A stretch of DNA of 64,000 nucleotides. Source: Thalia democratica. Lineage: Eukaryota. Made by a program: the position numbers and the translations under genes. Shown here piece after piece: positions 6,401 through 39,615 of the stretch (position 1 is its first letter; every line of letters starts with the position of its first letter). The notes under the pieces were generated by a model. It did no database searches. It saw only the letters and a list, made by a program, of their open reading frames with translations, and was not told the DNA's origin. The stretch is from contig OZ241829.1 in assembly GCA_965202585.1 (NCBI GenBank), forward strand, positions 49,228,001 through 49,292,000. Reading direction: 5' to 3'.

Positions 6401-9400
6401 TGTGTTTTAGGAATGTCTGAAGTCCATTAAGTAAGTTAAACAAAAAGTAAATTCGCCCCCCTATTAAAAGTATAACTTAATGAGTATAAACAAATACAAC
6501 TAGATGTTTTGGAAATTAGTAATTTTAGATGTGGAGAACTAAAACTGCTAACATAAAGTAAAGTAAAGAAAAATTATTTTTACGTTAAATGCTTAAGATA
6601 AAGAATATAATGATTAGATTTTACAAGAATAGTATATTTAAACTGTTTCAATTTTATTACGTAAGTACAATAAATTTTTACATTTGTTTAAAACTTTTAG
6701 TAATAATATATACAAATTTTTTTGTATACAAAAACAATTTTTGTTAATAAATTAAACTTAAAACAATTCATCCATTATTTTTTATTTATTTTTCGTACTG
6801 CTTTAGATTGCAAAATATTTGTTTTTCAGTTGTTTAAGCTTTTAAAAAATATTTAAAAGTATAAGAATTTAATAAAAATAATTTTTTAAGAGCTATTTAG
6901 AAATTTTTTGATGTAGAATTTTAAAAGGCGACATAATGTATGTAACACAAAATTAAAAAAAAAAATCTTAGAAGTTAACCAGTTATTAAGATTTTAAGAT
7001 TAAATCATCAATGTCGCTAATTTAAGAAGTAAAAAATTTTTTTGAACTATACATTTTAGATAATGAAGCAAAGAACTTTAAAAAAAATAAAAAAATTCCT
7101 TCGCCGACTAGCTTCTTTTGTGGAAAAAAAGATAATGGTCTTATATTTTTGAAATGGACAAAAATTCCCAAGTCCTACAATGTGACAGGATATCTAATTG
7201 AACAAAGACAAGCTCCTAACAATAGGTCAGCTTTAATAACTAAAATAGACAAAGTTTTTATGATCAAAAATTGTTTTTTGTAAAATTAAATAAGTAAACA
7301 ATTACAGTTGTCTGAAATACTTTTTTCTTAATAAAAATTTGTAGCTCTGACAGACAGGTTTAAAAATGAATTTAAGAGCGTAAAAAAAAGCTACTGGCAA
7401 TATTTAACTCATGTGAAGAAAAACATTAGCTACTATGTTATCAAAAAAAATCAAATTTTCAAAAACAAGTTTTATCAGTTTCAAGTGTTAGGTATAGCTG
7501 AAAACAGTTGGGGAAAACCAAGTACAGTAGTCAATGCTTCTACGAGAGGTTGAGCTTTGTTTAAACTTATTAAAATACTGTATCAAGATAACCGAACTAT
7601 TGTAACTTTTATTTTCTAATACACTTCTCTTAGACACTTTTTTTTAGTAGATACTAAACATTCTAACTAAAAAATTATATATCTAAAAACATTGAAGGTA
7701 AATAAGTAACACAAACGTTAATTTTTTAAAGAAATGCTACGCAGTTTTCTAAATTGAGCAGTTTTAAAAAAAGCTTAAAATAAACAGCTAAAAATTAGTT
7801 TCATAATCAAAACCTAAACTAGTTCGCATATTATGTACAGATATAGTTTTATACGTAACTTAAAACATTAATAGTAACTTAATATTATATTAACACTTAT
7901 AATAAAACTAACAAGTAATATAACATCAGTCAACTAAAAAAACAGCTTTTTTTTCTTTGTTATCTACTATTTAGCCTAAATCTTAAGTGTTCATACTAAA
8001 ACTATAATATTTATAACACTATTTTTTTACTTAAATAATTCCAGAATTTTTAAAATTTATTTAGTAAGGATATTGATAAAGTACGCATATTGAACCAAGG
8101 CAAAAGTTTGTTACTTACGCTAATTGCGTACTTTACAGTTTAGAGATAAATGTATCCTTTTCACACGAAATAGTAGCTAATGGCTACTAATTTAAGTAAA
8201 TATATAATACTTTTTTTTCTCATAAAATGTATGTTTTATATTTTTTATCATACTAAGATATTCTATTTGTTCATATAACTTTTTAATTTAATTTTAAAAG
8301 TATCATGATTAAAAAAATATGCTTATTTTGAAGTTTAGTATGCATTTTAGGCGTGTGCGTACCTTGTCGATGTCTCTACAGTACAATTTCATTATATAAA
8401 AGCACTAACAGAAACATTAAATACTTTCGAAATTATAAACTTAAAAAAAGCTTAATTCCATAGTTTATTTATTTTCTAGGAATATCCGTTTATAGCGAGT
8501 TAATTGAAAATGACAAAAGCAATAAAAAATTGATTGCAACTGCTATTTCTCTTAGTATGTTTTTTATAATATCTATGTGCATCGTCGTTTGTTTAATTTT
8601 TAGAAAAAGTACCAATATCACAAACAACAAGACTATTTCTGAAGGTAATTTTCTGTTTGATATTTATTAAAAGTATTCAGTATTACAAAATAAACCAGAA
8701 AAATAAACACAAATATGAATTTTTAAAGAGCTGAAAAGTGTATATATATTTATAATTTTATAAGTAAAACTATGCTTTCAATCAAATATGTAGACTAGAG
8801 TTAAAAAATTATCTAATATACTAGCCAAGTTTACGAGAAAGAATCTTTCGTGGGTCGTGTATTGATGAAAAGCTACGCTGTAAAAGATTAGAAAAAATTA
8901 AAGCCAAACTGTTATGTAATGATCTTTTATTAAACACTTTTGTATACTAAAAATCAAGCTAAATGCATATTTCATAATGTTTTGTATATATAAATAGGCT
9001 AGCGGACCGTATAAGTGTACCAGCAGGAATCAGCCTACTTAAAATATAACTAACAAATTAAAAAGCAAGCGTTTATAACATGTCATATACTTATAGTCTA
9101 CTACTTACATTTAAGTTACAGTTAACTGACTGATTATATCTAAAAAGATTAATTATTCAAAGCATGTAATGTTAACTTATAAACTTTTAATGATGTAAGG
9201 AGATATGTTGACCTAAAAGTTTAGAAATGTAAAAAACTTGAATCTTTTTAATATTTATGAAGGTCAGCAAAAACCTTGGGCTTGGCCATTACTTAAATAA
9301 AATATCTACAAGACTAATTCTAAATTATAAAATTACTTTTTGTATAAAACTTCTACTCCATCCGATTCGATATAACTTTAAGTTAAAAGTTTTCTTTACA

Positions 9401-12400
9401 ATTTCATGGCGTTTTAGTTAAACGTTTTAATCTCATGTTAGCATAAATATTTGATAGCTAAAGTTTTACATAAAAAGAAAAATTCTCATTTTTTCACCTT
9501 AATCGCTTTTTCAGTGAGAAAACTAACTTAAACGTTTTTTAATGGTTGATGTAGAATAAAACTATAAAAAACATCTGTAAATACTTACTTGACAAGCTTT
9601 ATTGAATAGAGTTTAAGATGCTTGTAATAAAATGTTGTTTAGTATGTGATATATACTTAGTCTTATTTGATAGTTTTAGTATAACAAGCAAACATTTAAT
9701 ATAATTTTTTTTTTAAATTGCAGAAATATTAGAAAATGATTCAGCTATCCATGCAAAAACGTTAGTTATTTTATAATTAATAAACTTTAAAACTTAAAAA
9801 TTTTAATTTAATTAGCTTTTATAGGGAAACTTTGGTCAAAAATTCTTGCTTAAAGCAGCTTATATCAATAACAAGCTCAAATGAATCAATACATTCAAAA
9901 ACTTCAAACTTAAACGAGCTTTCAAAAGTACTTTTTAATGAAGGTTACTTGATTATCTACGTTTTAATACATCTATAAATATGTATACACTCATTAGTTA
10001 TTTTAACTTTATATATATATATAAAACGGAAAACTTGAAAAATGTTAAGCTAAAAGTTTTAAACTTACTTTCAGGCTAACAAAAACTGATAACTTATTAT
10101 TCTGTTAGAACAAGAAAAAGGAAGTCTGCTAAATTCCAGTCTAAATTCTAACACTATACCAAAAAACTATAAGTTTAACAAAGGTGGCTTTAATTCTTTA
10201 TTTAAAGACAGCAGCTCGTCAACAGACAACGATGTAGACGAGGTGGTGGCTATGAGAAAAAAAGAACTTGCAAGCAAAATTTTTCATGACAATCAAAGAC
10301 ATCATTTTCATACTTTAGGTTGTTTGTTTGTCATAAATAGTATTTTTTTAAAAAATAATCATCTGTATGTACAATTATGTATTGCAATACGGTTGCATCT
10401 AACTACTAAATGAATAATATAGCCCTTAGGTGTTAACATAAACTATTTAAGCAATTTTTGTTATTACTTTTAAGATTTTAAATCTCGTGTGAATCAAGAG
10501 ATGAGGCCGTTAAAATCTAATCTTATACGAGGCTCTCCCAACTCATTTGAGAATAAAAACAATGAAGTAATATTCGCCTTAGTAGGAAACTCGTCATTGT
10601 TACCTGAAAAGAACCTTCCACGTACGAACCTGCAGCTGAAGCACCGAGATACGACATTTAGTCAAATGCGATCTTCAGTGTACAATTTTGACAGCTACCA
10701 AAATAGATTTTTAAACGTTAAAAAGCCAAGTTTAGTTAATTTACCGTTCCAATACAAACATGAAGAAGATGATGCTACTGTTGAGATTGACTGTAGCAAG
10801 TCTGATGTTAAGATTAGGCTTCATAAAAAGAATCCAACAATATTTTCAAACAATAAACACACATTTAAAAACAAAGAAGACAGCCGAAGATATAAAATTG
10901 GTTAGTTTTCGAATTAGTAAAAAAAAAAATTAAGTTAGTTTGTAATATAAATTGAAGAAAATGTTATATATTTTTTTATGTTGTTATAAGTATTATATAA
11001 CTAATTAAACTACCTACAGAGTTATTATCGTTCAATAAAACTCTTTAACAAGTTTATCTGTTTAAACAACTTTTATAAATATGTTACGCTTATCTTTAAT
11101 CTTTAAAATAATCATGATAGAAAACTAAAGTTTTTATTTGTAAAAGTCTTAATATCACATCAATATTGTTTTGTTTGACATTTTTGTTAATAGATTACTC
11201 AATTAAGATAAGTAGTTCAATCTATTTTAGATAAAAACTTTCTATTAATACCTAAAAATTTAATCTTAAAAACCGTGCTTTTTTATTTAATAATTGATGT
11301 ATAGTTTGTTTTAAAAAGGATCTAATAACGTTGAAGTAATCCAAAGAAGACGATCCTTATCTCAGCTTCATGTAAGTTTTGTTTTCTTCTATAATTTTTA
11401 GTGTTGAAATTTTTCTAAAGCAAAATACGAACAGAAACATTTCTTTTATAGGTACAGTTTGAACTTTTGTTTTTACATAGCAATGTTGACATTATTACTT
11501 ATGAAACAGAATACTGAATACTTGTTGATGCACAAACTAAATTTAAAGTATTTTAAAACTACTATAACTAAATAGCTTTTTTTAATAAATTTATAGAAAA
11601 ATATTCTATTTTTAGTTAAATCAAATATGTCTGATATTTTAAATCCGAAGTAGTATAGAGGAGTATTTATTAAAATATTCTTTTTTAAACAAAACGAACG
11701 CTTCATAGATACTTTTATACAAACTTATAATAACTTATTTTTTTAAAGTTTTAATAATATTTTTTTATACAAATATGATAAATTTAGAACACTAGTTTAT
11801 AAAGTTTAATCTCTATTGCTTGCATAAAAACTTATATTTATTAAAAATTTTTATGATTTAAGTTAAGTAAAGACCTCATCAAAATCAGTGAATAATCATA
11901 AACAACTTGTTTCTGTATCTATTTTTTAGCTTATCCGAGCTAGTTTACATTAAACTTTTTACGTAGCTTTTTGAAATTTTTCTAAATCTATTTTTGCCAA
12001 CATAAAGTTATGGTAAACATGTAACAATGGTTTCAGTTTTTAAAACATTAATATGTATAAGCATATTTCATTATTTTGTCTAGTAAAAATTTAGTCCTTT
12101 AACTTAAATGTTTTATTAATTAAAATTTTTATGTTTGAGAAATTTTTTGATAGTTATAGATAGATATACTAATATATAATTAAATACAAAATTAACTTAA
12201 TTTAAAACTAACACAAATTATTGTAAATTAACTGATCAATTAAACTTTAAACTACATACTTTAAATGCTTGAATTAGTTATGAAAAGTTTGAAAAGGAAA
12301 CACTAGTTTTATATATTTCAAAATATTTACAAAATAATCTAGTTTTATTTTGATTAAGTAAAATATTACCTAGTTATTTATCGATTGATTTTTTAGTATA

Positions 12401-14672
12401 AATTAGACATAAACTCTTGTGTACTTTAAGTATTATTTAGCAGCGGCTTTCAGAATTTAAATAAAGTTTATATTTTCTTTAACTTGTTAGTAATTTTTAA
12501 ATTACAAATATTTATTTAGGATAACTCATTGTAAGCATTTTTTAATATTATAACAATAGCTTTATTAAACTTTAAGGGATAAATAACTTGATTACTTTAA
12601 TGTAGGACTTTTTAAATCTGAGTTATAAAAACTAATTTAACTTTTTTTTTCAAAACCATTTTATTTTATAGTACTCTTACATAATTTTTAAATAAAACTT
12701 TTATAATTTTTTTTATAGTAATCTTCTGAATAAAAATTTAAGATTTTATTAGGAAAAAACCAATGAAGTAAAACTAGCGAGTCAAAAAGCAAAAATTCCA
12801 TCGAGATCTGTTTCGATTGAAGCACTTTTGAGTCCCAAATGGTTGCGTAAAAATGGTAGGGTTAAAGTTATAGCACAAAAGGCTAAAACTGAAAACAAGT
12901 TGAATAAGTCTAGATTAAAAGGAAAAAAATGTTTGCTTCCTACTCCAAAACTAATTAGTATTTCGGAATTGTGTCATTATAGCAGAAACTATAAAAACTC
13001 TAACGTAAAGGTTACAAAAAATATCGAAGACAAGGCCACATTAGAATCTGATCTGTCAAAAAACTTATCACCTCAAACTGCTCAAAAATCTGTTCGTTTT
13101 GCAAAACTTTCTTTATCAGAAGGTAATCATAGATTGAACTCTTTAAAAAAATCAAAATTAATCATTCAACAAAAACCAGGAGGTAGATTTCATTCTATAT
13201 TAAAACGCACAAACACACAGGACTCTAAAGTAAAACAAGCCGAAAACTTCATCACAACAGTATCAAGTTCGAACAATTTTTCACAGGGTAGTTTTTTAGA
13301 AAAGTACTATCTATCAAAATAGATATTAGCATTTTACTAAAGTTAAGCTTAATGAGTGTCTTTTGTGTAGTTTATATATTTGTTTTTGAATAATAGATGT
13401 TGTAATTTAATTTAAATTTTTATGTTTTTTTTTTAGAAAAACACTTTCTATACTATTTTAAACATAGTAAACGACTATTAGTTTAAACTTTAACATTATA
13501 GCTATAATTACATATAAATAAACACTTTATAATTTCCATCTTGTAGATAGAGTTATAGTTTTGTAAGGCTAACTTATGCAGATTTTTGTAAAGTTTGGTA
13601 AAAACTAGCTTTAACTGTGTGTAACTAGATTTTTGACCAAATTATATTACTGAAAATAACATTTTTTTTAAATAAATCTTCTACGTTGTAGTCTTTTTTT
13701 ATGAGATAAAAATATCATCTAAATATCTAAAGTAATTTAAAGGCTTATGTATATTCTTAAATAAAATAGATTCAAAATACCCGACGAAAATGGTTAAAAG
13801 GCTTTTAATGTCAAAATAACAAGTAAAAGACATTGATAAAAGCCTTTTTACCAGTGTCCTACTTATTGAAACGATTAACATTTGTACCAACGAACTTTAC
13901 AAATCAAATCTTAACATACTTATTACCCCCAAAGAAGTAGTAAAGAGCATTTTATACATGTCTGTGAAGAATATTTAATTCTTACTTTACAATTTTATTT
14001 ATAGACAAACTGATGGCTCGGCATGGAGAGTCCTTTAGGTCCTGTATTAGTGAATATTTTCATTTGGTATTTTGAATCCATTTTATTTAAGAATACAGAT
14101 AAGCTGTTTAATTACTTTAGATATGTAGATGATATCTTTATATTAAACAAAAAAGACTACAACGTAGAAAATTTATTTATTAAAATTTCTAACCTATTCC
14201 CTAACCTACAGAAAATAACATTAATTGAAATTAAATAAAGTTAGTTTAATTGTGTATAAATTTTTTGATTTTAATGTTGCATCGTTTTTACAAAAATACT
14301 AAATTCTAGGTTTGTCAAACCAGTCAAATGTTTCAGAAGCAAGTTCTTCAACTTCAATTTCACCAGTTGGGTTTTCTTCATTAATTGCTAACCGAAAAGA
14401 TAGGTAAAGCTTACATGTAGTTCTTTTTTCAAGTTAACTTTTTTTTTAATAAAAACTAGTTTTGATATATTTTTAGCAAAGCATGTATTTATTAACAAAC
14501 ACAACTTTCTACTTTTATTTTACGATGGCAAAACAGAAATAAGACGAAAGACAACTCTTCCGTGGAAGACAACTATGAATGGGATTCAGAGTATGCCATA
14601 GAATCTGAAATATTGGAAGCATTAAAGAAAATTGAAAATCATCAAACTTTAAATCTTTTCTCAGAAGTATGA
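236..14672 (+). CDS. Turtle/IGSF9-like Ig + fibronectin type III single-pass adhesion receptor, 5'-partial; join(236..442,1749..1891,2385..2681,2874..3033,4529..4643,5110..5297,7060..7225,7358..7548,8480..8644,9724..9760,9825..9943,10109..10318,10475..10900,11319..11371,12753..13287,14310..14403,14537..14672)
   Basis: All introns are GT-AG and phases close: 3242 nt = 2 + 1080 codons including the stop. Ig motifs (DSGLITCVASN, DHGKYSCSPRN, HHGEWRCIVSN), two FN3 domains (WKPGFNGG; TYDVSIVAVN; YQFQVLGIAEN), a TM helix and a long Ser-rich tail ending ...FSEV*. Domain order and linkers (QY...DCP; YSCSPRNIRGSSG...VVKPPKF) resemble Turtle/IGSF9 as I recall them. Confidence 0.8.
1380..1540 (+). mobile_element. 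Degraded Tc1-like transposase fragment
   Basis: gga aaa gta atc tag tcg gat gaa agc = GKVI*SDES, matching the Tc1 W..V.WSDES motif with a stop codon. Confidence 0.45.
1749..1891 (+). CDS. Turtle-like exon, Ig domain N-terminal half
   Basis: ttgcag acceptor; KAKPLQLPATQYAGLGLTITLDCPALSVPPVTSVDWFKN; donor gtttga. Confidence 0.75.
2385..2681 (+). CDS. Turtle-like exon, Ig/Ig junction
   Basis: aaacag acceptor; TIYDHGKYSCSPRN...KPPKFYLRP...VVPCSG...VKWKK; donor gtcagt. Confidence 0.8.
2874..3033 (+). CDS. Turtle-like exon, last Ig domain C-terminal half
   Basis: RLYISSLRKEHHGEWRCIVSNIVGKIQTSVFITVN; donor gtaagt. Confidence 0.8.
4529..4643 (+). CDS. Turtle-like exon, FN3-1 N-terminal part
   Basis: ttttag acceptor; TTPHAVEN...VKVGWKPGFNGGYRQSYQIW; donor gtaaaa. 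Confidence 0.8.
4780..4957. mobile_element. hAT-type MITE, 178 bp, in a Turtle-like intron
   Basis: 13-bp TIRs CAGTGCTTCTGAA; perfect 8-bp TSD CTTTAAAC at 4772-4779 and 4958-4965; four internal GGGTTCCGC motifs. Confidence 0.9.
5110..5297 (+). CDS. Turtle-like exon, FN3-1 C-terminal part
   Basis: ttacag acceptor; ANITELKEVTTYDVSIVAVNKIGIGYFS; donor gtaaaa. Confidence 0.8.
7060..7225 (+). CDS. Turtle-like exon, FN3-2 N-terminal part
   Basis: IPSPTSF...LIFLKWTKIP...VTGYLIEQRQ; donor gtcagc. Confidence 0.75.
7358..7548 (+). CDS. Turtle-like exon, FN3-2 C-terminal part
   Basis: SYWQYL...NKFYQFQVLGIAENSWGKPSTVVNAST; donor gttgag. Confidence 0.75.
8480..8644 (+). CDS. Turtle-like exon, transmembrane helix
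   Basis: LIATAISLSMFFIISMCIVVCLIF followed by the RK stop-transfer pair; ttctag / gtaatt boundaries. Confidence 0.8.
9724..9760 (+). CDS. Turtle-like 37-nt cytoplasmic exon
   Basis: ttgcag|AA...AC|gttagt; phases fit both neighbours. Confidence 0.6.
9825..9943 (+). CDS. Turtle-like cytoplasmic exon
   Basis: Open in the required phase (ETLVKNSCLK...LFNE); ttatag / gttact boundaries. Confidence 0.6.
10109..10318 (+). CDS. Turtle-like cytoplasmic exon
   Basis: EQEKGSLLNSS...DSSSSTDNDVDEVVAMRKKE...; open in the required phase. Confidence 0.65.
10475..10900 (+). CDS. Turtle-like cytoplasmic exon
   Basis: Contains ORF 10489..10905; ttttaag / gttagt boundaries. Confidence 0.7.
11319..11371 (+). 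CDS. Turtle-like cytoplasmic exon K (duplicated at 25105-25157)
   Basis: aaaag|GATCT...CAT|gtaagt; GSNNVEVIQRRRSLSQLH. Confidence 0.7.
12753..13287 (+). CDS. Turtle-like basic/Ser-rich cytoplasmic exon L (duplicated at 27296-27830)
   Basis: attag acceptor in frame with ORF 12828; donor gtagtt at 13288. Confidence 0.65.
13660..14240. mobile_element. Penelope-like reverse transcriptase relic with an inverted partial copy, in the intron between exons L and M (duplicated near 28200-28780)
   Basis: Plus strand DIDKSLFTSV...RQTDGSAMESPLGPVLVNIF...YFRYVDDIF (RT motifs A, B, C in PLE style); minus strand YFRYLDDIF at about 13680-13800. Confidence 0.8.
14310..14403 (+). CDS. Turtle-like cytoplasmic exon M (duplicated at 28852-28945)
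   Basis: ttctag|GT TTG TCA...GAT AG|gtaaag; GLSNQSNVSEASSSTSISPVGF. Confidence 0.65.
14537..14672 (+). CDS. Turtle-like terminal exon N with YEWDSE motif and C-terminal S-E-V (duplicated at 29079-29214)
   Basis: RNKTKDNSSVEDNYEWDSEYAIESEILEALKKIENHQTLNLFSEV*. Confidence 0.65.
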
Positions 14673-16823
14673 ATAAGACGTACAGTTTTTTAAAATTAAA
14701 CTATTTTTACAATGATTGAACTTTAAAGTTTCTTACAAGTTGTGATTAAGGAAGTAATAACTTTTTTTATTGATCTTTTTTTTATATTATGCTTATAAAG
14801 TATACTGAACTTAAAAACAATTAACTATAATATTTATTAAAAATATATATTTGTTTAATTATTTAAACTGTATACTGAAAGTATTTGTATGAATATAACT
14901 TTCTGAAAAGTAAAAATCTCTAAACATTTCAAAAATTCAACTTATTGAAATTCTATTTCACACTTTTGAATAAGCTTCATAAACTTTGATAGAAGTACAT
15001 AAACTTAAAAAAATTAAAAAAACTAAGAATAAAAGCATCTAATTTCTAATCTACTGAAACATATTTCTTAGCCTATTTTATTAGAAAAAAATTCAACAAA
15101 AAAGTTTGAAATAATTTAAGTTATACTCTAAACGTACGTAAAGTACAATTATATCTAGTTTTTTATACGTAAACTTTTATACGAAAGCTAGGTTTTTAAT
15201 ACGATCTAAAATTACGTAAACTATGCAGGTTAGTAAACTAAAAAAAAAGAATAAAACAGTTTGCTAAAATAAAATAAAAAATTAGTAAATCTTATACATT
15301 GTGTATGTTTTAGATAGGGCAGCTTTTTATAAGAAAAAGGTGAATTTTCTTATAAAAACTTGGTCGTGGGCCGCATATAATAGTTTTAGCAACCAGTAGA
15401 AATAATAACTTAATCGGTAAATATATCAAAAGTAATAGATAATAAATCCTCCAGTAATTACTATTTGTTAAATTTAGCCTCAATGTCGGTTTTCTTAACA
15501 AAATTATTTTCGATCGTTTTAAAAAGGTACATTTGTATGGTGAAAAGTATATCGCGGGTTGCATGTTTTTGTTTTGAGGGCTGCAGTGTTTATCGACCTC
15601 TGTTTAGAAGATAAAATAATAATTTTTGGTTGTTTTTGTTATTAAAACTCAGTTCATAAATGACACCTTCTAGATTAAATACTATTGTTAACGATAAGAA
15701 TGAGATTTTTTTAAGTAGTTAGAAAACTACTTTAAAAAATTTTAATTAAAAACTGTTGTATGCTAAATCCCTTATGTAAATCTGCTACTTAAATAATACA
15801 AAACAACTTTTATCGAATAGTTTAAGTTAATAAATGATTAAAACTTTTAGGACTTGCGTTTTAAAATAGAAAAGTTTGCAAAAGAAATCACCATATGTCA
15901 AGACTCGTCAGCTAACATTTACAAAAAGAAAATGCAATCTAGCAAGGTTTTTATAATTTTAAATTGTAAATTCAAATTGTATCCATTGCTTTAATAACAT
16001 AATAAAATTAATTACATCAAAATTCTAAACTTTAATTTGACTACCATAAAACTTTTATGTCAAAAATGTTTTCAAGTTACTTATTAATAATAACAGTAAA
16101 CAATTTTTTTTTTAATATTACTTTCTTATTCACCAGTATTCAAAACTGACTCTACAAGACTTGTTTAATTATATTAATAAGGCTTGTATACTTTTTATAT
16201 TGCTTCTAAACAAAAGAGCAGTTTTCATACATACATCATATCTATTTATAACTTCAATTTAAATAATGTTGCAACTTTATGCACAATTTTTTTAGCTTGG
16301 CAAGGTTTCTTTTAAAAATACTTCTTGAGACTTCTGAAAAAGGTGGTTATTAAAAAAACTTGCAGAGTACAGATTTTTAACTATTGAAAACTTGATAAAG
16401 CTAATAGACATTGTAAAAATAATTAAAAATTAAAAAAAATTGTATAATAGCTTTAACTTTAAGAGTTTATTTTCTACTTGTCTAGCTCTACCGAAAAACT
16501 ACTAAAAAAGTATGACTTATAAAGAAAAAAAATTAATTTATATAAAATAAATAATAGTATTATTCGTTATTGACAACTCTATAGTACTACTTAAAAAAGT
16601 TTTTAATGTGTTAAAAATACTTAATCTTATTTTCTTTTATGTTCTATATACATTTTAGTACTTAATAAAGTAACACTTTGACTTGTTAGGCATCAAGTAC
16701 CTCATCTGAAACATCCTTTTTAGATCCTGACTTAAAATCAGATTTAGAAAAAAGGTAAGCACGTTGTACTTTTTTAACAAAATAAAAAACTTACTACCAA
16801 ATACAGTTTTTAAATTTATTATA

Positions 16824-16940
16824 TGTCCTGGGCATGACGTTAAACTGTTCTGATGTATGACTCGATAACCGAAAGGTTTTTCGTGCACAAGGTCCTTGGA
16901 CCAAACCTTTTGAGCGTATTTTTTGTCGTTCAATAAACAA
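16824..16940 (+). repeat. Unclassified hairpin-bearing interspersed repeat, family H (duplicated at 31333-31449)
   Basis: gtcctgggcatgacgttaaa...gactcgataaccgaaaggtt...cgtgcac...ggtcc...ggacc...tttttgtcgttcaataaacaa. Confidence 0.7.
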
Positions 16941-19900
16941 TATATGAAGTAGGAGACAATTGTTTAAAAGCTAATAAGCTAAAATTCATAATTTTAGTAT
17001 TCTAGTAAGTTTAACGTCTTAGTTAGATGATAATAACAAAACTACTGTCGAACACAAAAATAAACAAGTAAGTATCAGTTTTTTAATATTGTTTTCTTAT
17101 GTTGTTATCATCAGATTATGAAATTAAAACTATTAAAAGAATAAATTAAACTCCAAACAACTTACAAACTTTATTTTTAATTAACTATGCTGCAACAAAC
17201 AAATGTTAACACTTTATTTTTAGTTTCTTTTAATAAAATTTTAAATGAATCTGACAAAAAACATAGCTAAATTAAGGTCTAATAACAATAACCGGTACAT
17301 AGAATTTTTTTCAAAACCTTTGAGACATAGTGTTTAGCTTGCGCAGTTGTTTAACAAAAAAATGTAGCATAGACACATGTTGAACAACTGTACTTACTAA
17401 AATATTTTTTTAAATTAGCTTTGATTTTTTTTTAATTTAAATGGACTAAAACTACTTACATTAGAAAATACATTTCTGGGCAGTAGACTGTATAACATTT
17501 AATCGTTACTTATGATTTAGTTTTATCAGTAGTTATAGCCCAAAACTTTTACAATAATCTAATTTAAACAATGTCTGTGTATAACAAAACTAGATAATAA
17601 TTGTAATTTGTTTTATTTAAAATAACTTATAAAAATATGATAATTTAAATACTTAAGTCTTACAACAAAAATTCAGATTACATCAATGTTTCGCAACTAA
17701 TACAAAAAAGTTAAAACTGCTACAAGAGTTTTGGTACTGCACAAAAACAGAACTTTGATTTTTAAAAAATTGTAAAAAGATAAATTTCAAGCCATCAATA
17801 CTTAATGTTTTATACTACAATTTTTTTTTAATTTTGTACACTATTTCACAAAAAAAAACTAACTAACTATTCTTTAAAACTACATATTTTATTACGCAAT
17901 GTGAACCAGATCATATCAAAGTTCTGCTATGTACTTTGAAAATTAAGTAGATTTTTTAATAAACTTATATTTTTTTGAATTAATAAATTTTTACCAGCAG
18001 CTTAATTTTACTAACGTTTTTTGTTTGAAAATTTACATCAAAATTGTTACCCCATTAAGATGGCTTTTAAAAAGTTTTAAAACTTATACAATAGTTATAA
18101 AACTTATAAAAATTGTATCTGAAACTAAGACGATCATATGGATTAGCTATGTTTCAAACACACTTACGTTATATAAAAACAACTGTATTAATATGAACAT
18201 CGAGCAGAATTTTAGTTTACTAATATTTACATTTCCCATAATAATTAACTTAAATTATTAGCTGCTTTATGTAGCATGGTTTTAAATTAACTTTTATTTT
18301 TAGATGTGCACGATTAGTTCTACAGTTTGAAAGATTTAGACAAAAGACAAACTCGGAATCTTTATCTGAAAAAGAAAAAATCAAAAAAGATTCGTTCGGC
18401 TGATAGTACAATAGACTTAAAGTTTGAATGTATAAGACAACTGTCGTCTTTAAGTTTATAGCTTGCGATAGAAAAATAAATGCATTATAAGTGCTTGACC
18501 ACAAAAGTAACATATAGTTACTTTAGAGTTAGATCAGTGTTAGAAACAAATACAAATTGCCTTAAGTGAAGTATTGCTGTATTTATTTTCTAACTTTAAG
18601 ATTTAAATAATTTTAAACATTTTTTAAACTTTGAATACTAGGCTTTTTGAAAATAAAGCTACTCGAATACCTCTATTTGTTCAAGTTCTTCACTAAAACT
18701 AAACTGCATACTGTTGTTCATTGAAAAATTGTTTTTAGAAAATTATTAGTACGTTTTTGTTAAATTTCGAATAAAAAATTAAAAGCTCTTTTGCTGCTCT
18801 TATTACTACTAATTCTATTCTTATTTAGTTAAACAATTTGAAAAATTCAATTTATGATTTATTTTGATACTCTTTTGTTTTCTATTTTTGTTGACAATTG
18901 ATATTTAAACAACAGTTATTACAAAAATTGTTACATCTACATTAAATCTTATTGAATAAGTTGAATTACCCAATTTATTTTCTGTAAAACTTTTGTATAT
19001 CTTGGTATGTAGATTTGTTAAAGATTGAAAACCAAACGAAAACGGCGTTAAAAAGTTCAAAAGTTTCTATTCTATATTAAAAAACGCTTGTAAAGTAAAT
19101 AAACAATATTTTAGTTGAAAAAATTTAGTTTGTCGCTAAAAATTCTTATAGTAGTAAAATTCTTAAATATATTTTTATATTTGTTTCTAAAGTTTTATAG
19201 GGTTTTAACTTAAAAAATTATAAGGCTTCATATCAACTAAGAAAAGTGTTTAATACTTATACCTGGTAGAATTTAGATTTAGATAACGTGTTAAACATGT
19301 AAAATTTTAGGTAATTTTTTTTTGTTTAGCATTTACAAAAATTATTTACGTTCTACAACTGAATTATACGAATATAGTCAAGTAGTACTTGTATTGCATA
19401 AAGCTATATTTTAGTTTAAAATTGATTGCAAATTACAAAGTTCAAACTAAAATCAATACTACCTACATTTAGTTTTGTTGTACTTTATTTAATAAAGTAA
19501 AGTTGAATGGCCTTTTTTTTACAATTTTTCAATAAACAATAAGTAAAAAATTTAATTAATTCAATCACCAGACATCGTAGGTAATAAAAATAGTAATTTT
19601 GAAAATTTGACGTTAAAATTTTTGACTTCGAAACAAAGTTAAATTTACAGCTATAAATTTTTACAAGTTAGAAGAACAGACACATAAAATAATAAAAATT
19701 GATCTCTTTAGTTCAAGATTTTAAAGGTATGAAGATAAATGTACAAAGACTTAACAATTAAGTCTACTAATTTTAAGAAGAGTTAAGTAAGTTTTAGTGT
19801 CAAATAATATTTTAACTGATATTTGTTTACTTTTTCTTTAAACAGCAAAATACTAAGCAATCATCTAAGTTATCTTTAAATTTCATAAAGTAAACGCAAA

Positions 19901-20519
19901 AACGTTTAATTCCGTACTTTAAATATCTAACAAAGAATTATATAAAGTTTCTTTCTACCTAAAAGTTTTAACACATTAGAACTTTTCGATCCATGTTTTA
20001 GGACTTAAAGTTTCCCATTAAACACAAATCCCCTGCCCGCGACTTACTAAATTCCATTTGTTTGTAAAAAAATCCAATATTAGTAAAACTTTTTTTGTCG
20101 AGTTTTACAAATATGCTGTTGGTTTAATTGAGGGGTCGACAGCTTTTTAAAATCTTTAATTTTCTTACAAAAGTTTGGTCGCGAACAGCATTATTTAAAA
20201 AAAAAAATTGCGGTTTGCAATCTTTTATAATAACTAAAATAGCTAAGAAAGAAAAAATACCATTTCAAAAAAAGATGTGATACAAGCAATAGTAAAGCAC
20301 AACTTATTACTAATTATCTAATTAAAATCCTAGTTACAAAATTTCACATCAAATTTTATTTCAACGGTTTAATAAAAGTTTTTTTTGACTAAGAAAAACA
20401 TTGCAAGCCGAAGGTTTTTTTTGCCGCACTTTTCCGACACCTATTTTAAATGTAAATAACTAAGTTGTTGTTTCAAAGATAGTATCTTTATAACTTTAAT
20501 GTTTAACAAAATACATTTC

Positions 20520-21370
20520 ATTTTCTTTAAATTTATTTAAGTACTTTCAAGTAGGACTCGTCAGAAATAGTTTCCTACTGAATTGGAATGAATACAAATT
20601 GAAATAAAATTATACTGCAGTTTAAAGTTTTAAGATATAAAATGACGTAATAATCAAATGTTAAAAATTAAATAAGTGCTAGTGCTAAACAAATTTGGTA
20701 TACTAATAAAACTCGGTAGAATTAAAACAATCTAAATAAAGAGGCGATAAAAATTTTAAATTAAAACTATGCATAAAAATAAAGTTTAACAAGAAACTAA
20801 TTACTTTAAAATTACTAATATAAGGGTTTAAAAAGTCTAGTTTAGTAAACGAACTTTTTCTGCTTACATAAACTGGGCCTTAAAAATTAAATACATAAGG
20901 CTTCCAGAATATGCAATTGAAAAGAGTTCTCCGCTCTCACTAAGACTGAAAAATTGTCCTTTTTATAATTTTGCCCAATCGCCGAGAAGTATTTTTTAGT
21001 TGGTTTCTCAGAACGGCCATCAAACCACTTTTTCAAGACTTTCGGAACATGTTGATCGATTCTTACATGAAACCTTTGAGATGTTTTTCCCACGTAGTCA
21101 CTACCACAGTGACAACTAAACTTATAGATGATGTTACTTTTTTCATGGGTGGGAGAAACGTCTTTGTAAATTCCACTTAGAGGTCGATCAGTATACAAAA
21201 CTGTTCATAAATGAACAGAGCTGAAAACTTGGCTTATTTCCTCTGAAGTTTTCTTAGAAAACCTCTCAGAAATTTTTCCAAGGTAAGGAAGTTTTAAGTA
21301 TACTGGACACTTCTGAGGGCCAATCATTTTTAAAGCTGTTGAACTTCTAGCTCTTGTTATAACTTTGTTT
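20520..21370 (-). mobile_element. Penelope-like element 3' relic: linker, GIY-YIG endonuclease and 3' region with hammerhead
   Basis: Minus strand GPQKCPVYLKLPYLG...SNIIYKFSCHCGSDYVGKTSQRFHVRIDQH...LEALCI, with stops; hammerhead motif about 320 nt downstream. Confidence 0.85.
20534..20569 (-). ncRNA. Minimal type I hammerhead ribozyme candidate (PLE-associated)
   Basis: Minus strand UAUUU-CUGACGA-GUCCUACUU-GAAA-GUAC-UU/AAAUA: 5-bp stem I, intact CUGANGA and GAAA cores, palindromic stem III (AAGUACUU), CUU cleavage triplet; stem II reduced to a G-U pair. Confidence 0.6.
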
Positions 21371-21718
21371 CGAAAGTTTTAAATAGAAATAATGTCTTTA
21401 CTACTTATTGTTCAGTTCAAAGTAAAATAGTTTATAAGCAAAAATGTTATCCTAATGCAAAAATTTTTATCTTTTCTGTATGTTAAGTAACTTCTCGCTT
21501 GAGTATGCACTACTGGTTCAGTTCGCACATTGTAGCCAAAAAACGATACCTGAAAGTAGCAGTACAGGATTATTATATATTAAAATATTTTTTATGTATT
21601 AAAGTTGCATAAAACAAAAACTAAAGGAGTCTTAAAAAGTTGTTATCAACTCAAAAGTTGTACATCAAATGCTATATTTAAAACAAACACATCACAGTTT
21701 ATATAATATAAAAACTAA

Positions 21719-21836
21719 CAGTGCCCTATACAAGACGTTAAAAGGTATCCGTGGTGTACGACTCGATAACCAAAAGGTTCTTCGTGCACCAGGTCTTAAG
21801 ACCAAATATTTTTAGCGCTTTTTTTCGTTTAATAAA
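21719..21836 (+). repeat. Family H repeat (duplicated at 36228-36345)
   Basis: cagtg...caagacgttaaaaggtatccgtggtgtacgactcgataaccaaaaggttcttcgtgcaccaggtc. Confidence 0.75.
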
Positions 21837-22080
21837 AAATAAGAGTGCAATTGACACTTGCATATCTAATCATTAAATCATTGGAATAAAGAATATTTTT
21901 AGCTTTATGTTAAAATTTAGACAAACGAAAATAAGGATCAATTCAATAGACATTTACATACTCAATAATTGAAACATAAATATAAAAAACATATAAAAAG
22001 TTATAATATATTTTAGTTATCTAACGAAAATAATGAACAATGTAATTGAAATTAATTTAGAACTAGATGCTCTTGTAAAC

Positions 22081-22678
22081 GGGGACGTGTAAAATATGCA
22101 CGAAGACACTTTTGCACAAAGGGTCAAATATGCACCAAGGGTCACTTTTGCACGAAGGGCCATTTTTGCACGAGAGCAAAAAAATTAAAGTAAAAAAAAA
22201 TAGTAATAATAAATTATTTGAAAAAAAACCGACCAAAGGTAAGGGTTAAAAATAACAGTGATAAAACAAAAAACAAAAAGGATTATTTTTTTTTAAATAC
22301 CGACCAAGGGTAAGGGCTAAGGATAACAGTAATAGCAAAAAAGAAATAAAAAATAATAAAAAACAAATTGTAATTATTGAAAAAACTATAACAAGCATTA
22401 AAAATAAATAAAAACCAAGTTACTGACCAAAGGTAAGGGTTAGAGGTAACAGTGATAGTTGAAAAGTATAAAATATAAATTAATTTCTTAAAAAATAAGG
22501 TAAAGTAAAACAAAAAGTTACCGACAAAGGGTAACGATTACAGGTAACAGTTATGGTAATAATAAAAAATATAACTAAACAAAATTAATAAATCAATTAT
22601 AATAAAATTTACAATTTAACCCGTACAAAAAAGTCTTTAAACAAAAGTGTTCCTTTGTGCATATTTGATACCTACCCC
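22081..22678. mobile_element. Unclassified non-autonomous DNA element with degenerate GGGG...CCCC TIRs and internal tandem repeats (duplicated at 36590-37187)
   Basis: Left end GGGGACGTGTAAAATATGCACGAAG versus reverse complement of right end GGGGTAGGTATCAAATATGCACAAAGG; subterminal TTTGCACGAAGGG repeats; four ccgaccaaaggtaagggtta...aacagt units. Confidence 0.6.
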
Positions 22679-23449
22679 TTGAAACATGTCTGTTAGTGGA
22701 GCTTGTCATTTAGATATATCAGATACTTTTTTTTATTTGCAAATTGCTTTCAATATATTCTGAAATGTTTAAAAGCTAATTTAGCTCTCTTTCGTTGTTT
22801 TTACCGGCAGCTACTTGCATTTCTACTAAAGACAGCTCTTCTTCTAGAATGACAGTCTTTGTGTAAACGTTATCAAAAGTACTTTCAGCTTTGAAAGTAT
22901 GACTGTTGCTACCAACATCAACTAGCTCATCCTAATCTGATGTTATATTATATTCTTAATTTACTATTGCTGTTCAAAAAACGGTTTGCATCTTCTGATA
23001 TTGTTTCTTGGAACTTTTGACTTTTTCATCATCTATGCCTAAAAATTCCTCAATATCTTTATGTGTGGCTTTAATGTTAAATTTTTTTTTAATCGCAAAA
23101 AATCATTGTTTTCAAAGGTCCCTGTGACAGCATCACTTAAACTTATACTTATTTCTGTCTTTTGTTTTTGTGGTGAATGTTTTGTTTTTGGGATCTTTTA
23201 TATTATAGTAATCAGTAAATTTTAGTGGCTTTTAAAGTATTTGTGTTTGGTTTAATTTAAGTAAATAGTGACCAGGATTTCCTGAGTGCGTACTGCCAGT
23301 TGGCTATGCACTTTTGCGCTGTGTTCAAAGTGCATATCAAGAGGTAGGTAACTTTAATTTTAAAATGAGTAAAAATGGCTACTCAGGCTTTATGGTAGTT
23401 AACTAGTATTATAGTTTGTTGAACGACATATAAAAGCATAAAATATTTG

Positions 23450-23536
23450 GTTCCAGGACCTGGTGCACGAAGATCTTTTCAGTTATCGAGGTCGCACACC
23501 ACGAATACCTTTAACATCTTGTCCAGGACAACACTG
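23450..23536 (-). repeat. Family H repeat, reverse orientation (duplicated at 37959-38045)
   Basis: Reverse complement cagtgttgtcctggacaagatgttaaaggtattcgtggtgtgcgac...tcgtgcaccaggtcctgg. Confidence 0.75.
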
Positions 23537-25104
23537 TATGTATAGTAGAAAAGTATAACTGTATACACATAACAGAAAAGATTTTCAAAACATGAATGTG
23601 TGACTAAAAATAAACTTTAATATCAGTTATCATCGACATTAGGCATTTGAGGTATGTATGGAAAAAAAAAATTCCAAAGTGTAACTTAACATTCTCCTTT
23701 TATTCAAGTTGAGAACTTTGATTGCCAATCTTAAAGTATAAAATACCCAAAGTGTAACTTAATAGTTTGATTTTCAATAAGCTTCTTTAAAGTCCTTAAT
23801 TTTTAAAACTTAAACGTGCACAACTTTTATTTTCTTTTTTGTGATATCAGTTTCTACTTTGTTTTAGTTTTTATTCAGTGAGTTTTAGTAAACTTTTATT
23901 AAAAATAAAAAAAATTAGGATCTAGTTTAAAGTACTTGATTTTTATAAGTAAATTATTATTATCTATAAGCAAACTTAAACAAGTTCAACACGCAAAAGC
24001 TAATTCTTTTTTATGTTTTAATCAAATATTTTAAAGTGTTATACTTATAGTTTTAGTTATGTATAATATTTAAATGTTGATAAAATATTTAAAAATGTTC
24101 AATAACACTTCTCTATCCTAATTTTCAATTTGTTTTTTTTTTACCATGTATTGGTTCCTAGGCCTTTAATGAAATTGAAAGATTATTCTTTTTTTTTATA
24201 TTCTTACATGACTTGATTCGAATCAGAATGACTACATTCTAAATTAAAATTTTAAAAGAAATAAAATATTTCAATAAATTTTTTGATTTCTAAAAATATT
24301 TCTATTATTAATGAGTTTTAGCCAAAAGTATTTATTTGTAGGTTTTTAAATATGATAGCATTAACTAAAAAACTGAAAACATTTTTGCAAAAGTTTTAAT
24401 TTTAATGATATATGCTAACAAATATTCTCGTTTTTTTTTAAGTTTAAACTAGCTTGGATAAATTAATGTCAAATTTTAACTATAAAATCAAACTGGACTG
24501 GACAATGTAATTACAAGCAAAACAGTTATCAAACTAAACATGATAATTTAATGTTTTAATTTTAATGATTTTTAAACATGATTTTAAACATTATTTTTAA
24601 ACATGATAATTTAACTAAACGTGTTTTAATTTTACTTTAAATATGCTAAAGTTTTTCATAACATAGATTTTTGAGTATAAAACTTTTATTATATTAATTA
24701 AATTTGTTTTATATTTATAACTAATAAAATTATATCAAAAAGCATGGTTTCTCAAAATGTGTTCGAGTACAAAAAAGTACTTCGTTTTTTATTTTTTGTA
24801 CGAAAAAAACTTTTATAATTATACTCGATAATTGCAAAACAATGAAAAAAGTCTTATTTTATTACACTTTACTTTTTTAACAACTTTTTGTTTTTTTTTT
24901 GTTTTTGTTTATACTAATAAAGTATTAAAATTACTTTGGTAATGAATCTTATCAATTTTAACAGCAAAAACTTTCTTTTCTAGTAATCAACTTTTAACAC
25001 TATAAGTGGTGTGCGACTTAATAACTGAAAAGAGTCGAAAGGTATTTAATCTTAAAAACCGTGCTTTTTTATTTAATAATTGATGTATAGTTTGTTTTAA
25101 AAAG

Positions 25105-28100
25105 GATCTAATAACGTTGAAGTAATCCAAAGAAGACGATCCTTATCTCAGCTTCATGTAAGTTTTGTTTTCTTCTATAATTTTTAGTGTTGAAATTTTT
25201 CTAAAGCAAAATACGAACAGAAACATTTCTTTTATAGGTACAGTTTGAACTTTTGTTTTTACATAGCAATGTTGACATTATTACTTATGAAACAGAATAC
25301 TGAATACTTGTTGATGCACAAACTAAATTTAAAGTATTTTAAAACTACTATAACTAAATAGCTTTTTTTAATAAATTTATAGAAAAATATTCTATTTTTA
25401 GTTAAATCAAATATGTCTGATATTTTAAATCCGAAGTAGTATAGAGGAGTATTTATTAAAATATTCTTTTTTAAACAAAACGAACGCTTCATAGATACTT
25501 TTATACAAACTTATAATAACTTATTTTTTTAAAGTTTTAATAATATTTTTTTATACAAATATGATAAATTTAGAACACTAGTTTATAAAGTTTAATCTCT
25601 ATTGCTTGCATAAAAACTTATATTTATTAAAAATTTTTATGATTTAAGTTAAGTAAAGACCTCATCAAAATCAGTGAATAATCATAAACAACTTGTTTCT
25701 GTATCTATTTTTTAGCTTATCCGAGCTAGTTTACATTAAACTTTTTACGTAGCTTTTTGAAATTTTTCTAAATCTATTTTTGCCAACATAAAGTTATGGT
25801 AAACATGTAACAATGGTTTCAGTTTTTAAAACATTAATATGTATAAGCATATTTCATTATTTTGTCTAGTAAAAATTTAGTCCTTTAACTTAAATGTTTT
25901 ATTAATTAAAATTTTTATGTTTGAGAAATTTTTTGATAGTTATAGATAGATATACTAATATATAATTAAATACAAAATTAACTTAATTTAAAACTAACAC
26001 AAATTATTGTAAATTAACTGATCAATTAAACTTTAAACTACAGTAGACTACCGCTTAAGTACGCACTTTTTTTGGTACGCACCCCGCCTTAAGTACGCAC
26101 TTATCCAGAAAGATAAAAAAAATATTTTAAATTTTTTACATATTTCTTATAGTTTTTTATAAATAAAACTAAACTTAGCTTAACTAGCAATCTATTCAGA
26201 ATAAAAAAAAATCTTGGATTTATTTCATCATTTCAAAAAGTGTGAGCTGCTTGGTTTTCTTTCTGTGCGAGCCCTGCTCAGATAAGGCTGCTTTGTTTAG
26301 CAAACGTTGATATTTTTCATAGGTGCTTTTTAGCTTGTGACAGAGCTCAGGAGCTATACCAAGTGCTGCTTCACTAGAGAGCTGACACTCTGTTTCCACA
26401 GCTTCAGTGTATAGCTTGGTGTACCCACGAAATTGACATTGATTAGATCCTGCAGCCATCTCATTATTTTCTTCATCATTAAAGTGAATAGCAGCACTTG
26501 GTTTAATAGGTGTACAAGGTCTTCAACATCTACCTCCTTTACAGGACTTGAGTCATCTTCTTGATCGACAAATTGAATTTTTAGACCAGCTTTTCGAAAG
26601 AAATTTTGGATCGCTTTAAACATTATTTAAAATAAAAAGACTTGTTTATTTGGCTTAATTATTTGGTGGCTAGTTGTAAGAAAGAAAACAAACAACTAAG
26701 TTTCATATTATACTATGTCGTCAAAAAGTACGCACTACCCGTGCTAAGTAAGCACTTTTTGGTCGGGTTCAATTTGCGTACTTAAGCGGTAGTCTACTGT
26801 ACTTTAAATGCTTGAATTAGTTATGAAAAGTTTGAAAAGGAAACACTAGTTTTATATATTTCAAAATATTTACAAAATAATCTAGTTTTATTTTGATTAA
26901 GTAAAATATTACCTAGTTATTTATCGATTGATTTTTTAGTATAAATTAGACATAAACTCTTGTGTACTTTAAGTATTATTTAGCAGCGGCTTTCAGAATT
27001 TAAATAAAGTTTATATTTTCTTTAACTTGTTAGTAATTTTTAAATTACAAATATTTATTTAGGATAACTCATTGTAAGCATTTTTTAATATTATAACAAT
27101 AGCTTTATTAAACTTTAAGGGATAAATAACTTGATTACTTTAATGTAGGACTTTTTAAATCTGAGTTATAAAAACTAATTTAACTTTTTTTTTCAAAACC
27201 ATTTTATTTTATAGTACTCTTACATAATTTTTAAATAAAACTTTTATAATTTTTTTTATAGTAATCTTCTGAATAAAAATTTAAGATTTTATTAGGAAAA
27301 AACCAATGAAGTAAAACTAGCGAGTCAAAAAGCAAAAATTCCATCGAGATCTGTTTCGATTGAAGCACTTTTGAGTCCCAAATGGTTGCGTAAAAATGGT
27401 AGGGTTAAAGTTATAGCACAAAAGGCTAAAACTGAAAACAAGTTGAATAAGTCTAGATTAAAAGGAAAAAAATGTTTGCTTCCTACTCCAAAACTAATTA
27501 GTATTTCGGAATTGTGTCATTATAGCAGAAACTATAAAAACTCTAACGTAAAGGTTACAAAAAATATCGAAGACAAGGCCACATTAGAATCTGATCTGTC
27601 AAAAAACTTATCACCTCAAACTGCTCAAAAATCTGTTCGTTTTGCAAAACTTTCTTTATCAGAAGGTAATCATAGATTGAACTCTTTAAAAAAATCAAAA
27701 TTAATCATTCAACAAAAACCAGGAGGTAGATTTCATTCTATATTAAAACGCACAAACACACAGGACTCTAAAGTAAAACAAGCCGAAAACTTCATCACAA
27801 CAGTATCAAGTTCGAACAATTTTTCACAGGGTAGTTTTTTAGAAAAGTACTATCTATCAAAATAGATATTAGCATTTTACTAAAGTTAAGCTTAATGAGT
27901 GTCTTTTGTGTAGTTTATATATTTGTTTTTGAATAATAGATGTTGTAATTTAATTTAAATTTTTATGTTTTTTTTTAGAAAAACACTTTCTATACTATTT
28001 TAAACATAGTAAACGACTATTAGTTTAAACTTTAACATTATAGCTATAATTACATATAAATAAACACTTTATAATTTCCATCTTGTAGATAGAGTTATAG

Positions 28101-29214
28101 TTTTGTAAGGCTAACTTATGCAGATTTTTGTAAAGTTTGGTAAAAACTAGCTTTAACTGTGTGTAACTAGATTTTTGACCAAATTATATTACTGAAAATA
28201 ACATTTTTTTTAAATAAATCTTCTACGTTGTAGTCTTTTTTTATGAGATAAAAATATCATCTAAATATCTAAAGTAATTTAAAGGCTTATGTATATTCTT
28301 AAATAAAATAGATTCAAAATACCCGACGAAAATGGTTAAAAGGCTTTTAATGTCAAAATAACAAGTAAAAGACATTGATAAAAGCCTTTTTACCAGTGTC
28401 CTACTTATTGAAACGATTAACATTTGTACCAACGAACTTTACAAATCAAATCTTAACATACTTATTACCCCCAAAGAAGTAGTAAAGAGCATTTTATACA
28501 TGTCTGTGAAGAATATTTAATTCTTACTTTACAATTTTATTTATAGACAAACTGATGGCTCGGCATGGAGAGTCCTTTAGGTCCTGTATTAGTGAATATT
28601 TTTATTTGGTATTTTGAATCCATTTTATTTAAGAATACAGATAAGCTGTTTAATTACTTTAGATATGTAGATGATATCTTTATATTAAACAAAAAAGACT
28701 ACAACGTAGAAAATTTATTTATTAAAATTTCTAACCTATTCCCTAACCTACAGAAAATAACATTAATTGAAATTAAATAAAGTTAGTTTAATTGTGTATA
28801 AATTTTTTGATTTTAATGTTGCATCGTTTTTACAAAAATACTAAATTCTAGGTTTGTCAAACCAGTCAAATGTTTCAGAAGCAAGTTCTTCAACTTCAAT
28901 TTCACCAGTTGGGTTTTCTTCATTAATTGCTAACCGAAAAGATAGGTAAAGCTTACATGTAGTTCTTTTTTCAAGTTAACTTTTTTTTTAATAAAAACTA
29001 GTTTTGATATATTTTTAGCAAAGCATGTATTTATTAACAAACACAACTTTCTACTTTTATTTTACGATGGCAAAACAGAAATAAGACGAAAGACAACTCT
29101 TCCGTGGAAGACAACTATGAATGGGATTCAGAGTATGCCATAGAATCTGAAATATTGGAAGCATTAAAGAAAATTGAAAATCATCAAACTTTAAATCTTT
29201 TCTCAGAAGTATGA
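25105..29214 (+). CDS. Second, intact copy of Turtle-like exons K', L', M', N': join(25105..25157,27296..27830,28852..28945,29079..29214)
   Basis: No coding differences from copy 1 noticed and splice sites intact; the copy has no upstream exons of its own. Confidence 0.55.
26041..26799 (-). mobile_element. Internally deleted pogo/Tigger-type (Tc1/mariner superfamily) non-autonomous element, 759 bp
   Basis: Perfect 25-bp TIRs CAGTAGACTACCGCTTAAGTACGCA; TA TSDs at 26039-26040 and 26800-26801; subterminal AAGTACGCAC repeats; minus-strand transposase C-terminal relic (IQNFFRKAG, acidic stretch, KQLTLFEMMK). Confidence 0.9.
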
Positions 29215-38800: not shown

Positions 38801-39514
38801 AAAAATATTTCTATTATTAATGAGTTTTAGCCAAAAGTATTTATTTGTAGGTTTTTAAATATGATAGCATTAACTAAAAAACTGAAAACATTTTTGCAAA
38901 AGTTTTAATTTTAATGATATATGCTAACAAATATTCTCGTTTTTTTTTAAGTTTAAACTAGCTTGGATAAATTAATGTCAAATTTTAACTATAAAATCAA
39001 ACTGGACTGGACAATGTAATTACAAGCAAAACAGTTATCAAACTAAACATGATAATTTAATGTTTTAATTTTAATGATTTTTAAACATGATTTTAAACAT
39101 TATTTTTAAACATGATAATTTAACTAAACGTGTTTTAATTTTACTTTAAATATGCTAAAGTTTTTCATAACATAGATTTTTGAGTATAAAACTTTTATTA
39201 TATTAATTAAATTTGTTTTATATTTATAACTAATAAAATTATATCAAAAAGCATGGTTTCTCAAAATGTGTTCGAGTACAAAAAAGTACTTCGTTTTTTA
39301 TTTTTTGTACGAAAAAAACTTTTATAATTATACTCGATAATTGCAAAACAATGAAAAAAGTCTTATTTTATTACACTTTACTTTTTTAACAACTTTTTGT
39401 TTTTTTTTTGTTTTTGTTTATACTAATAAAGTATTAAAATTACTTTGGTAATGAATCTTATCAATTTTAACAGCAAAAACTTTCTTTTCTAGTAATCAAC
39501 TTTTAACACTATAA

Positions 39515-39615
39515 GTGGTGTGCGACTTAATAACTGAAAAGAGTCGAAAGGTATGTTCAACAAGTCCTTAGACCAAACTTTTCTCAGCGCTTTTCTATCG
39601 TTTTATAAACAACAT
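39515..39615 (+). repeat. Diverged family H repeat containing the right duplication breakpoint
   Basis: gtggtgtgcgacttaataactgaaaagagtcgaaaggtat|gttc...agtccttagaccaaac...tatcgttttataaacaa; truncated at 25045 in unit 1. Confidence 0.65.

Follow-up and report, generated by a model that had tools for sequence, protein, structure and literature searches.

The question raised by this locus is how two copies of one segment, arranged in tandem and nearly identical, come to differ at a single site, where the upstream copy reads TACATA and the downstream copy holds a 759-bp transposable element. Was the element present before the segment was duplicated and then lost from one copy, did it reach the other copy later, or is one of the two states a product of other processes or of the assembly? 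The window, that is the whole stretch of 64,000 nucleotides that was analysed, corresponds to C5:49228001-49292000 of an 801-Mb assembly and is AT-rich (G+C about 25%). Positions given below are window coordinates unless a contig or locus is named, and the features are collected in Table 1. The comparisons discussed here make it very probable that a transposase excised a pogo-type element from unit 1 recently, after the tandem duplication.

Self-BLAST and MAFFT alignment delimit a tandem duplication of 13.8 kb in the window, present in exactly 2.0 copies. When the element is set aside, unit 1 and unit 2 differ by 4 substitutions (0.03%), two 1-bp indels and one 34-bp indel. With C805, an unplaced contig described below, used as the polariser, the changes derived in unit 1 are the loss of the element, an added T at 13425, a T at 16196 and a T at 22354. 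Those derived in unit 2 are a T at 28603, an added A at 29558, a C at 29795 and the loss of a 34-bp palindrome. Such small derived changes number about three in each unit, and this distribution fits two genuine paralogues that have evolved independently for a short time.

The 34-bp indel is a near-perfect palindrome with 15-bp arms and a 4-nt loop, and ATTTT direct repeats lie on either side of it. It was considered as a member of a repeat family and as the footprint of another element, but both were rejected as the genome has it at this locus only. Its absence from unit 2 is likely to be the result of slippage between the 5-bp ATTTT repeats after the duplication. An additional insert of about 170 bp in C805, able to form a hairpin, adjoins the palindrome, has the 8-bp direct repeats ATTTTAAT on both sides and is missing from both units. 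This insert was rejected as an abundant hammerhead retrozyme because Rfam gave no hammerhead match; its only Rfam matches were sub-threshold and miRNA-precursor-like, as expected of a long hairpin. One ORF of the duplicated unit and its duplicate in unit 2 give a weak, below-cut-off GIY-YIG match (16.6 bits), which fits a Penelope-like element relic, and no other Pfam domain was found in the ORFs of the unit. The footprint itself is positioned in non-coding AT-rich DNA.

Table 1. Coordinates of the features at the duplicated locus and of related sequences elsewhere in the genome (columns: feature, position, strand, remarks, basis).
Unit 1	11258-25043	.	bears footprint	self-BLAST, MAFFT
Unit 2	25044-39554	.	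bears element	self-BLAST, MAFFT
2-bp AT microhomology	25044-25045		tail-to-head joint of unit 1 and unit 2	
Excision footprint TA-CA-TA	12253-12258	.	TA 12253-12254, CA 12255-12256, TA 12257-12258	
Left TA of target-site duplication, unit 2	26039-26040	.		
Non-autonomous pogo-type element, 759 bp	26041-26799	+	internal-deletion derivative	
Left TIR, 25 bp	26041-26065	+	CAGTAGACTACCGCTTAAGTACGCA	
Transposase gene remnant	26220-26623	-	about the last 135 codons, one frameshift, lacks catalytic residues	translation
Right TIR, 25 bp	26775-26799	-	perfect complement of left TIR	
Right TA of target-site duplication, unit 2	26800-26801	.	followed by ctttaaatg as in unit 1	
34-bp palindrome	15705-15738 (unit 1)		present in C805 (L037 ~9330-9365); absent from unit 2, at 30247/30248	
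Hairpin-forming insert of C805, ~170 bp	L037:9150-9320	-	strand relative to window	
ORF with weak GIY-YIG match	20887-21195	-	duplicate in unit 2	
Mini element, 70 bp	L045:301-370 (C1:25574667-25574736)		TA-flanked	
Second pogo family element, 2,231 bp	L048:547-2777 (C7:5404528-5406758)			
HTH-only frame	G000 C9:10405266-10405742			
HTH-only frame	G000 C7:34405530-34406012			
HTH-only frame	G000 C6:15480794-15481267			
HTH-only frame	G000 C6:15468910-15469419			
HTH-only frame	G000 C2:42325278-42325463			

The terminal inverted repeats (TIRs) of the element in unit 2 match each other at 25 of 25 positions and begin with CAGT, and subterminal repeats of the TIR inner half, with the motif GTACGCAC, come after the left TIR. 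The transposase gene remnant is collinear with the C-terminal parts of both L022, another copy of the family, and the full-length pogo transposase P0001. The same 759-bp variant occurs at three loci (the window, L003 and L004), all of which are TA-flanked and differ by 5-10 bases (0.7-1.3%). Three insertions of this defective variant imply that the variant itself has been mobilised in trans.

At the corresponding site unit 1 reads aaacTA-CA-TActttaaatg, within aaacTACATActttaaatg. This sequence is made up of both TA copies of the target duplication and a CA that equals bases 1-2 of the left end of the element. The only difference between the units at the site is that unit 1 is without element bases 3-759, a 757-bp gap, and the identical flanks of the gap extend over 999 bp (left) and 1168 bp (right). 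The joint of the gap is blunt: it cannot be shifted in either direction, which means that microhomology is absent. The hexamer TACATA occurs 40 times in this AT-rich window and is thus too common to be informative in itself; the evidence is the paired comparison of the two units. The initial annotation had placed TACATA in unit 1 where unit 2 keeps the element, which holds to the base. It had also classed the scar as a Tc1/mariner end-joining footprint, in which both TAs are left with two terminal bases of the element, and the Tc1 literature agrees (PMC12632400).

Which of the two states came first can be judged from other copies of the locus. There are only three copies in the genome: unit 1, unit 2 and the unplaced 36.6-kb contig C805. 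The contig starts to align with the window at position 1 and remains collinear across the left flank and into one unit, with 99.3-99.5% identity, and judging from this collinearity it is the alternative haplotype. C805 is occupied: the element sits at the same TA and has the same orientation. A three-way alignment gives 53 substitutions in 13581 positions (0.39%) separating C805 from both units and 4 (0.03%) separating the units from each other, which places the coalescence of units 1 and 2 about 13 times more recently than that of either with C805. Only 2 of 759 bases distinguish the element copies of C805 and unit 2, which suits alleles related by descent. Differences between C805 and unit 2 also occur close to the element, 35 bp on its left side and 25 bp on its right, and at these positions unit 1 agrees with unit 2. 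Since these flanking variants are common to the two units and not to C805, the scar arose on the haplotype background of unit 2.

The site is occupied on three haplotype backgrounds, namely unit 2, C805 and that of an independent sample (X6). With C805 and X6 both filled and the units only 0.03% apart, these comparisons point to the occupied state as ancestral and to unit 1 as the copy that lost bases 3-759. Unit 1 apart, neither TACATA nor a single TA was seen at the site in the genome, C805 or X6, and no never-occupied single-TA site was found in the genome, while JGI metagenome contigs gave 0 matches. The proposal that the element is older than the split of the units is borne out by its presence at the exact site in C805 and X6. 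The excision had also been described as very recent, and in relative terms it is, as the units differ by 0.03%, the haplotypes by 0.39% and the 759-bp insertions by 0.7-1.3%.

Read-level evidence was taken from Logan contigs and unitigs, which are built on a 31-mer graph and in which contig depth gives no allele fractions. X4 and X5 are two runs of one sample that contain 99% and 95% of the words of the window, and this sample is probably the source individual. In each run one contig contains the joint 26042->26800, that is the 757-bp skip. Among the unitigs of X4 and X5 one ends exactly at 25045, another consists of 25044-26042 (999 letters), and the next begins 30 letters before the joint. 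The break at the unit end means that the tail of the unit continues both to a unit head and to the right flank, and the break at 26042 means that TACA continues both to G (the element) and to T (the scar). Such breaks indicate that the reads contain the duplication joint as well as both the filled and the footprint alleles; the short joint-spanning contig itself is not among the matches listed for X4 and X5. X6 comes from another study, has another organism label and is about 99.3% identical at the locus. One of its contigs begins outside the unit, passes 25044 and reaches the left TIR unbroken, and another exits the right TIR, so X6 represents a third haplotype, and a filled one. The X6 contigs contained no footprint joint and no duplication joint. 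Mis-assembly, which had been named as a possible source of the unit 1 sequence, is unlikely for the footprint, given that contigs of X4 and X5 hold the joint and stop exactly at the duplication boundaries.

A related possibility is that the footprint is real and that the tandem duplication is an artefact of the assembly, in which a filled and a footprint allele of one locus were joined in series by the assembler; one of them could be a somatic variant in the sequenced material or belong to a third haplotype. A copy number of exactly 2.0 and the very high identity of the units are in keeping with this. C805 stops about 170 bp short of the unit end, so it does not show the arrangement on the other haplotype, X6 is without the duplication joint, and the read-level support consists of contigs. 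However, the X4 and X5 unitigs stop at 25045 and start at 25044, which requires tail-to-head k-mers in the reads. A 2-bp microhomology at the joint is typical of real duplications, and with C805 as reference both units show derived substitutions of their own, so that an end-to-end artefact appears improbable. Slightly less probable still is a deletion of the 757 bp that was independent of transposase, for example by hairpin formation of the 25-bp inverted repeats during replication, followed by breakage and end joining at the base. Inverted repeats are prone to deletion, unit 2 also lost its 34-bp palindrome, and searches of the assembly found no intact cognate transposase. But both breakpoints of the 757-bp loss fall within 2 bp of the element ends, and the product is the canonical Tc1-type footprint with both TAs kept (PMC9976928, PMC12632400). 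Slippage would instead have used the TAC direct repeat and left a single TA, in the way that the palindrome was lost via ATTTT.

The reading in which TACATA is the original empty site and the element reached unit 2 later draws only on the frequency of the hexamer in the window. An insertion at either of its TAs would give TA-element-TACATA or TACATA-element-TA, not the observed TA-element-TA. Unit 2, C805 and X6 are all filled although the units coalesce far more recently with each other than with C805, and the few differences between the C805 and unit 2 elements are those of alleles by descent. A later arrival in unit 2 is so improbable that it can practically be set aside, and the possibility of TACATA as the ancestral empty site, which had been put forward for checking, is contradicted by the filled state of C805 and X6.

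Recent excision by a transposase raises the question of the family to which the element belongs. The 25-bp TIR, with at most 2 mismatches, was found 1288 times in the forward and 1301 times in the reverse orientation in the genome (2,589 in total) and a reversed control gave 0, which corresponds to about 1,300 family copies. TA flanks were seen in all cases examined: the window copy and its C805 allele, the insertions of the 759-bp variant at L003 and L004, and a 70-bp mini element. This mini element, the smallest copy and an extreme case of internal deletion, consists of hardly more than two 25-bp TIRs. The family copies examined are internal-deletion derivatives of 650-1750 bp, every one of them a deletion derivative. 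Interrupted gap repair after excision yields such internal-deletion series.

The DDE_1 domain is found in relatives within the family, and the window copy retains only the part beyond the catalytic domain. L076 has an open frame of 231 aa that matches Pfam DDE_1 (PF03184) with 80.5 bits, and L022 has a frame of 282 aa covering the end of DDE_1 and the C-terminus (PF03184, 24.2 bits). A PF03221 match (C2:47613627-47613803) lies directly upstream of a family-type DDE fragment. In the representative-protein library the full-length relatives have at most 55% identity, and there are also short fragments of 78-90%. The nearest full-length relative in this library, P0001, has 552 aa, is 52% identical over the DDE region and contains CENP-B_N, HTH_Tnp_Tc5 and DDE_1, with both HTH domains present. 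The DDE_1 relatives, the domains of P0001, the TA duplication and the CAGT-type TIRs place the family in the pogo superfamily, of which, on these sequence features, it is a newly described member. Two family copies on small contigs were considered as further polymorphic sites, and neither gave footprint information. One is a 1.2-kb copy inside another repeat (L023, C242:26593-29927); in a 90-94% paralogue of that repeat (C5:80576124-80578154) the flanks are adjacent, as an unoccupied site of a paralogue would have them. For the other copy there is no allelic partner.

Where could the transposase have come from? An excision that followed the duplication means that a suitable enzyme has acted since the duplication, and the view that a pogo transposase was recently active in trans follows logically from this. 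The search that the initial annotation had recommended, for a full-length element with the same 25-bp TIRs and an intact DDD ORF, found none in the assembly. Six-frame searches of the genome with two family-specific fragments and P0001 as queries found no intact cognate transposase; the family-type matches are all partial or contain stops, with longest open frames of 231-282 aa. Whole-genome Pfam scans with DDE_1, in which, as in the six-frame searches, all candidates were scored, and with HTH_Tnp_Tc5 also found no intact family transposase, and TIR pairs 2.5 kb and 1.7 kb apart (L043 and L044) contain no transposase ORF. Several stop-free frames of 263-437 aa, the longest of them at C2:42325278, match only the N-terminal HTH part of pogo transposases, with no DDE_1 match nearby. 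Judging from their domain content they may represent host genes that arose from the DNA-binding domains of pogo.

The top DDE_1 matches were rejected as the cognate source as they belong to a different family and are without the TIR of the window element. This second pogo family is represented by a 2,231-bp element in L048. Its TIR, CAGTGCTTCCTCGCTAATCCGG, begins with CAGTGCTTCC, and the inner half is repeated three times subterminally; this subterminal motif differs from that of the window element. The intact pogo ORFs, of up to 541 aa (L048), all belong to the second family and have CENP-B_N, HTH_Tnp_Tc5 and DDE_1. The L048 protein is about 39% identical to the window family over the DDE N-terminal fragment and 32% identical to P0001 over the whole protein. 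There are about 30 copies of the second family, 95-97% identical to L048, and with this divergence of 3-5% it looks older than the window family. The enzyme of L048 would, by these sequence comparisons, be a poor fit as the source for the window element. One conceivable reading is that the approximately 1,300 MITE-like copies are still being mobilised without an intact transposase of their own family in the genome, either by the 541-aa enzyme of the older family or by a rare or polymorphic master copy that was not assembled. This reading is doubtful, and the sequences examined give no support to cross-mobilisation; if it were true, a non-cognate enzyme or a missing master copy would be a sign that a planktonic marine animal has a live pogo transposon system.

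The following history of the locus is proposed. A non-autonomous pogo element would have entered at a TA long ago, before the sampled haplotypes split. The 13.8-kb segment with the element would then have been duplicated in tandem on one haplotype, and a pogo-type transposase supplied in trans would later have excised the element from the upstream copy. In this excision the 5' cleavage would fall two bases inside the element and the 3' cleavage at the element ends, so that the first two element bases remain attached to the flanking DNA, where they presumably form a 3' overhang of 2 nt like that of Tc1 and Tc3. End joining without homologous template repair would keep both TAs and one CA, which gives TA-CA-TA. 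The CA scar hints at cleavage two bases inside the 5' ends in this pogo lineage, as in Tc1 and Tc3, although the stagger is read here from one footprint and a single event cannot fix it. To our knowledge there is little direct evidence on such cleavage geometry for pogo elements. The sequence comparisons show the two states and their polarity, the identical flanks, the read support and the pogo nature of the family; the cleavage geometry, the repair route and the identity of the enzyme are inferred, and its present activity is conjectural.

The locus is a new example of a well-known phenomenon, and the understanding of how such elements work is unchanged by it. It offers a natural and internally controlled case of cut-and-paste excision, with a filled and a scarred paralogue, a filled alternative haplotype and a filled independent sample. 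The activity of a DNA transposon in the species is dated by it to a time later than a duplication that is 0.03% diverged, and it counts as evidence, of moderate interest, that DNA transposons have moved recently. The young and abundant family provides a lead towards an active pogo transposase. A puzzle is posed by the combination of many young non-autonomous copies and a very recent excision, yet no intact cognate transposase in the assembly.

Similarities with several known systems can be recognised. The product is identical to that of Tc1 of Caenorhabditis elegans, where both TAs and two terminal bases of the element are left and where 73-78% of somatic excisions give TACATA or TATGTA (PMC12632400). 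Unlike Tc1, the window element belongs to the pogo lineage, with DDE_1 (PF03184) remnants in the family and a CAGT-type TIR, and the scar is a natural allele, fixed in the assembly in a tandem paralogue, that was neither induced nor somatic. With Passer, an active pogo element with footprints of 0-4 bp (PMC9976928), it shares the TA target, and P0001 has the pogo-type architecture. Unlike Passer, no intact family transposase was found here, and the activity is read from one scar. The pogo-related MITE Emigrant, for which natural empty sites keep TIR bases (PMC1636448), forms with Lemi1 of Arabidopsis a similar system of non-autonomous deletion derivatives that have a TIR and subterminal repeats of its inner half and are mobilised in trans. 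In mPing strains the complete cognate autonomous element is absent (PMC1636448), and the present genome, in which no such element was found, resembles mPing without Ping. In contrast to Emigrant/Lemi1 and mPing, the element described here resides in an animal genome and keeps a recognisable C-terminal coding remnant.
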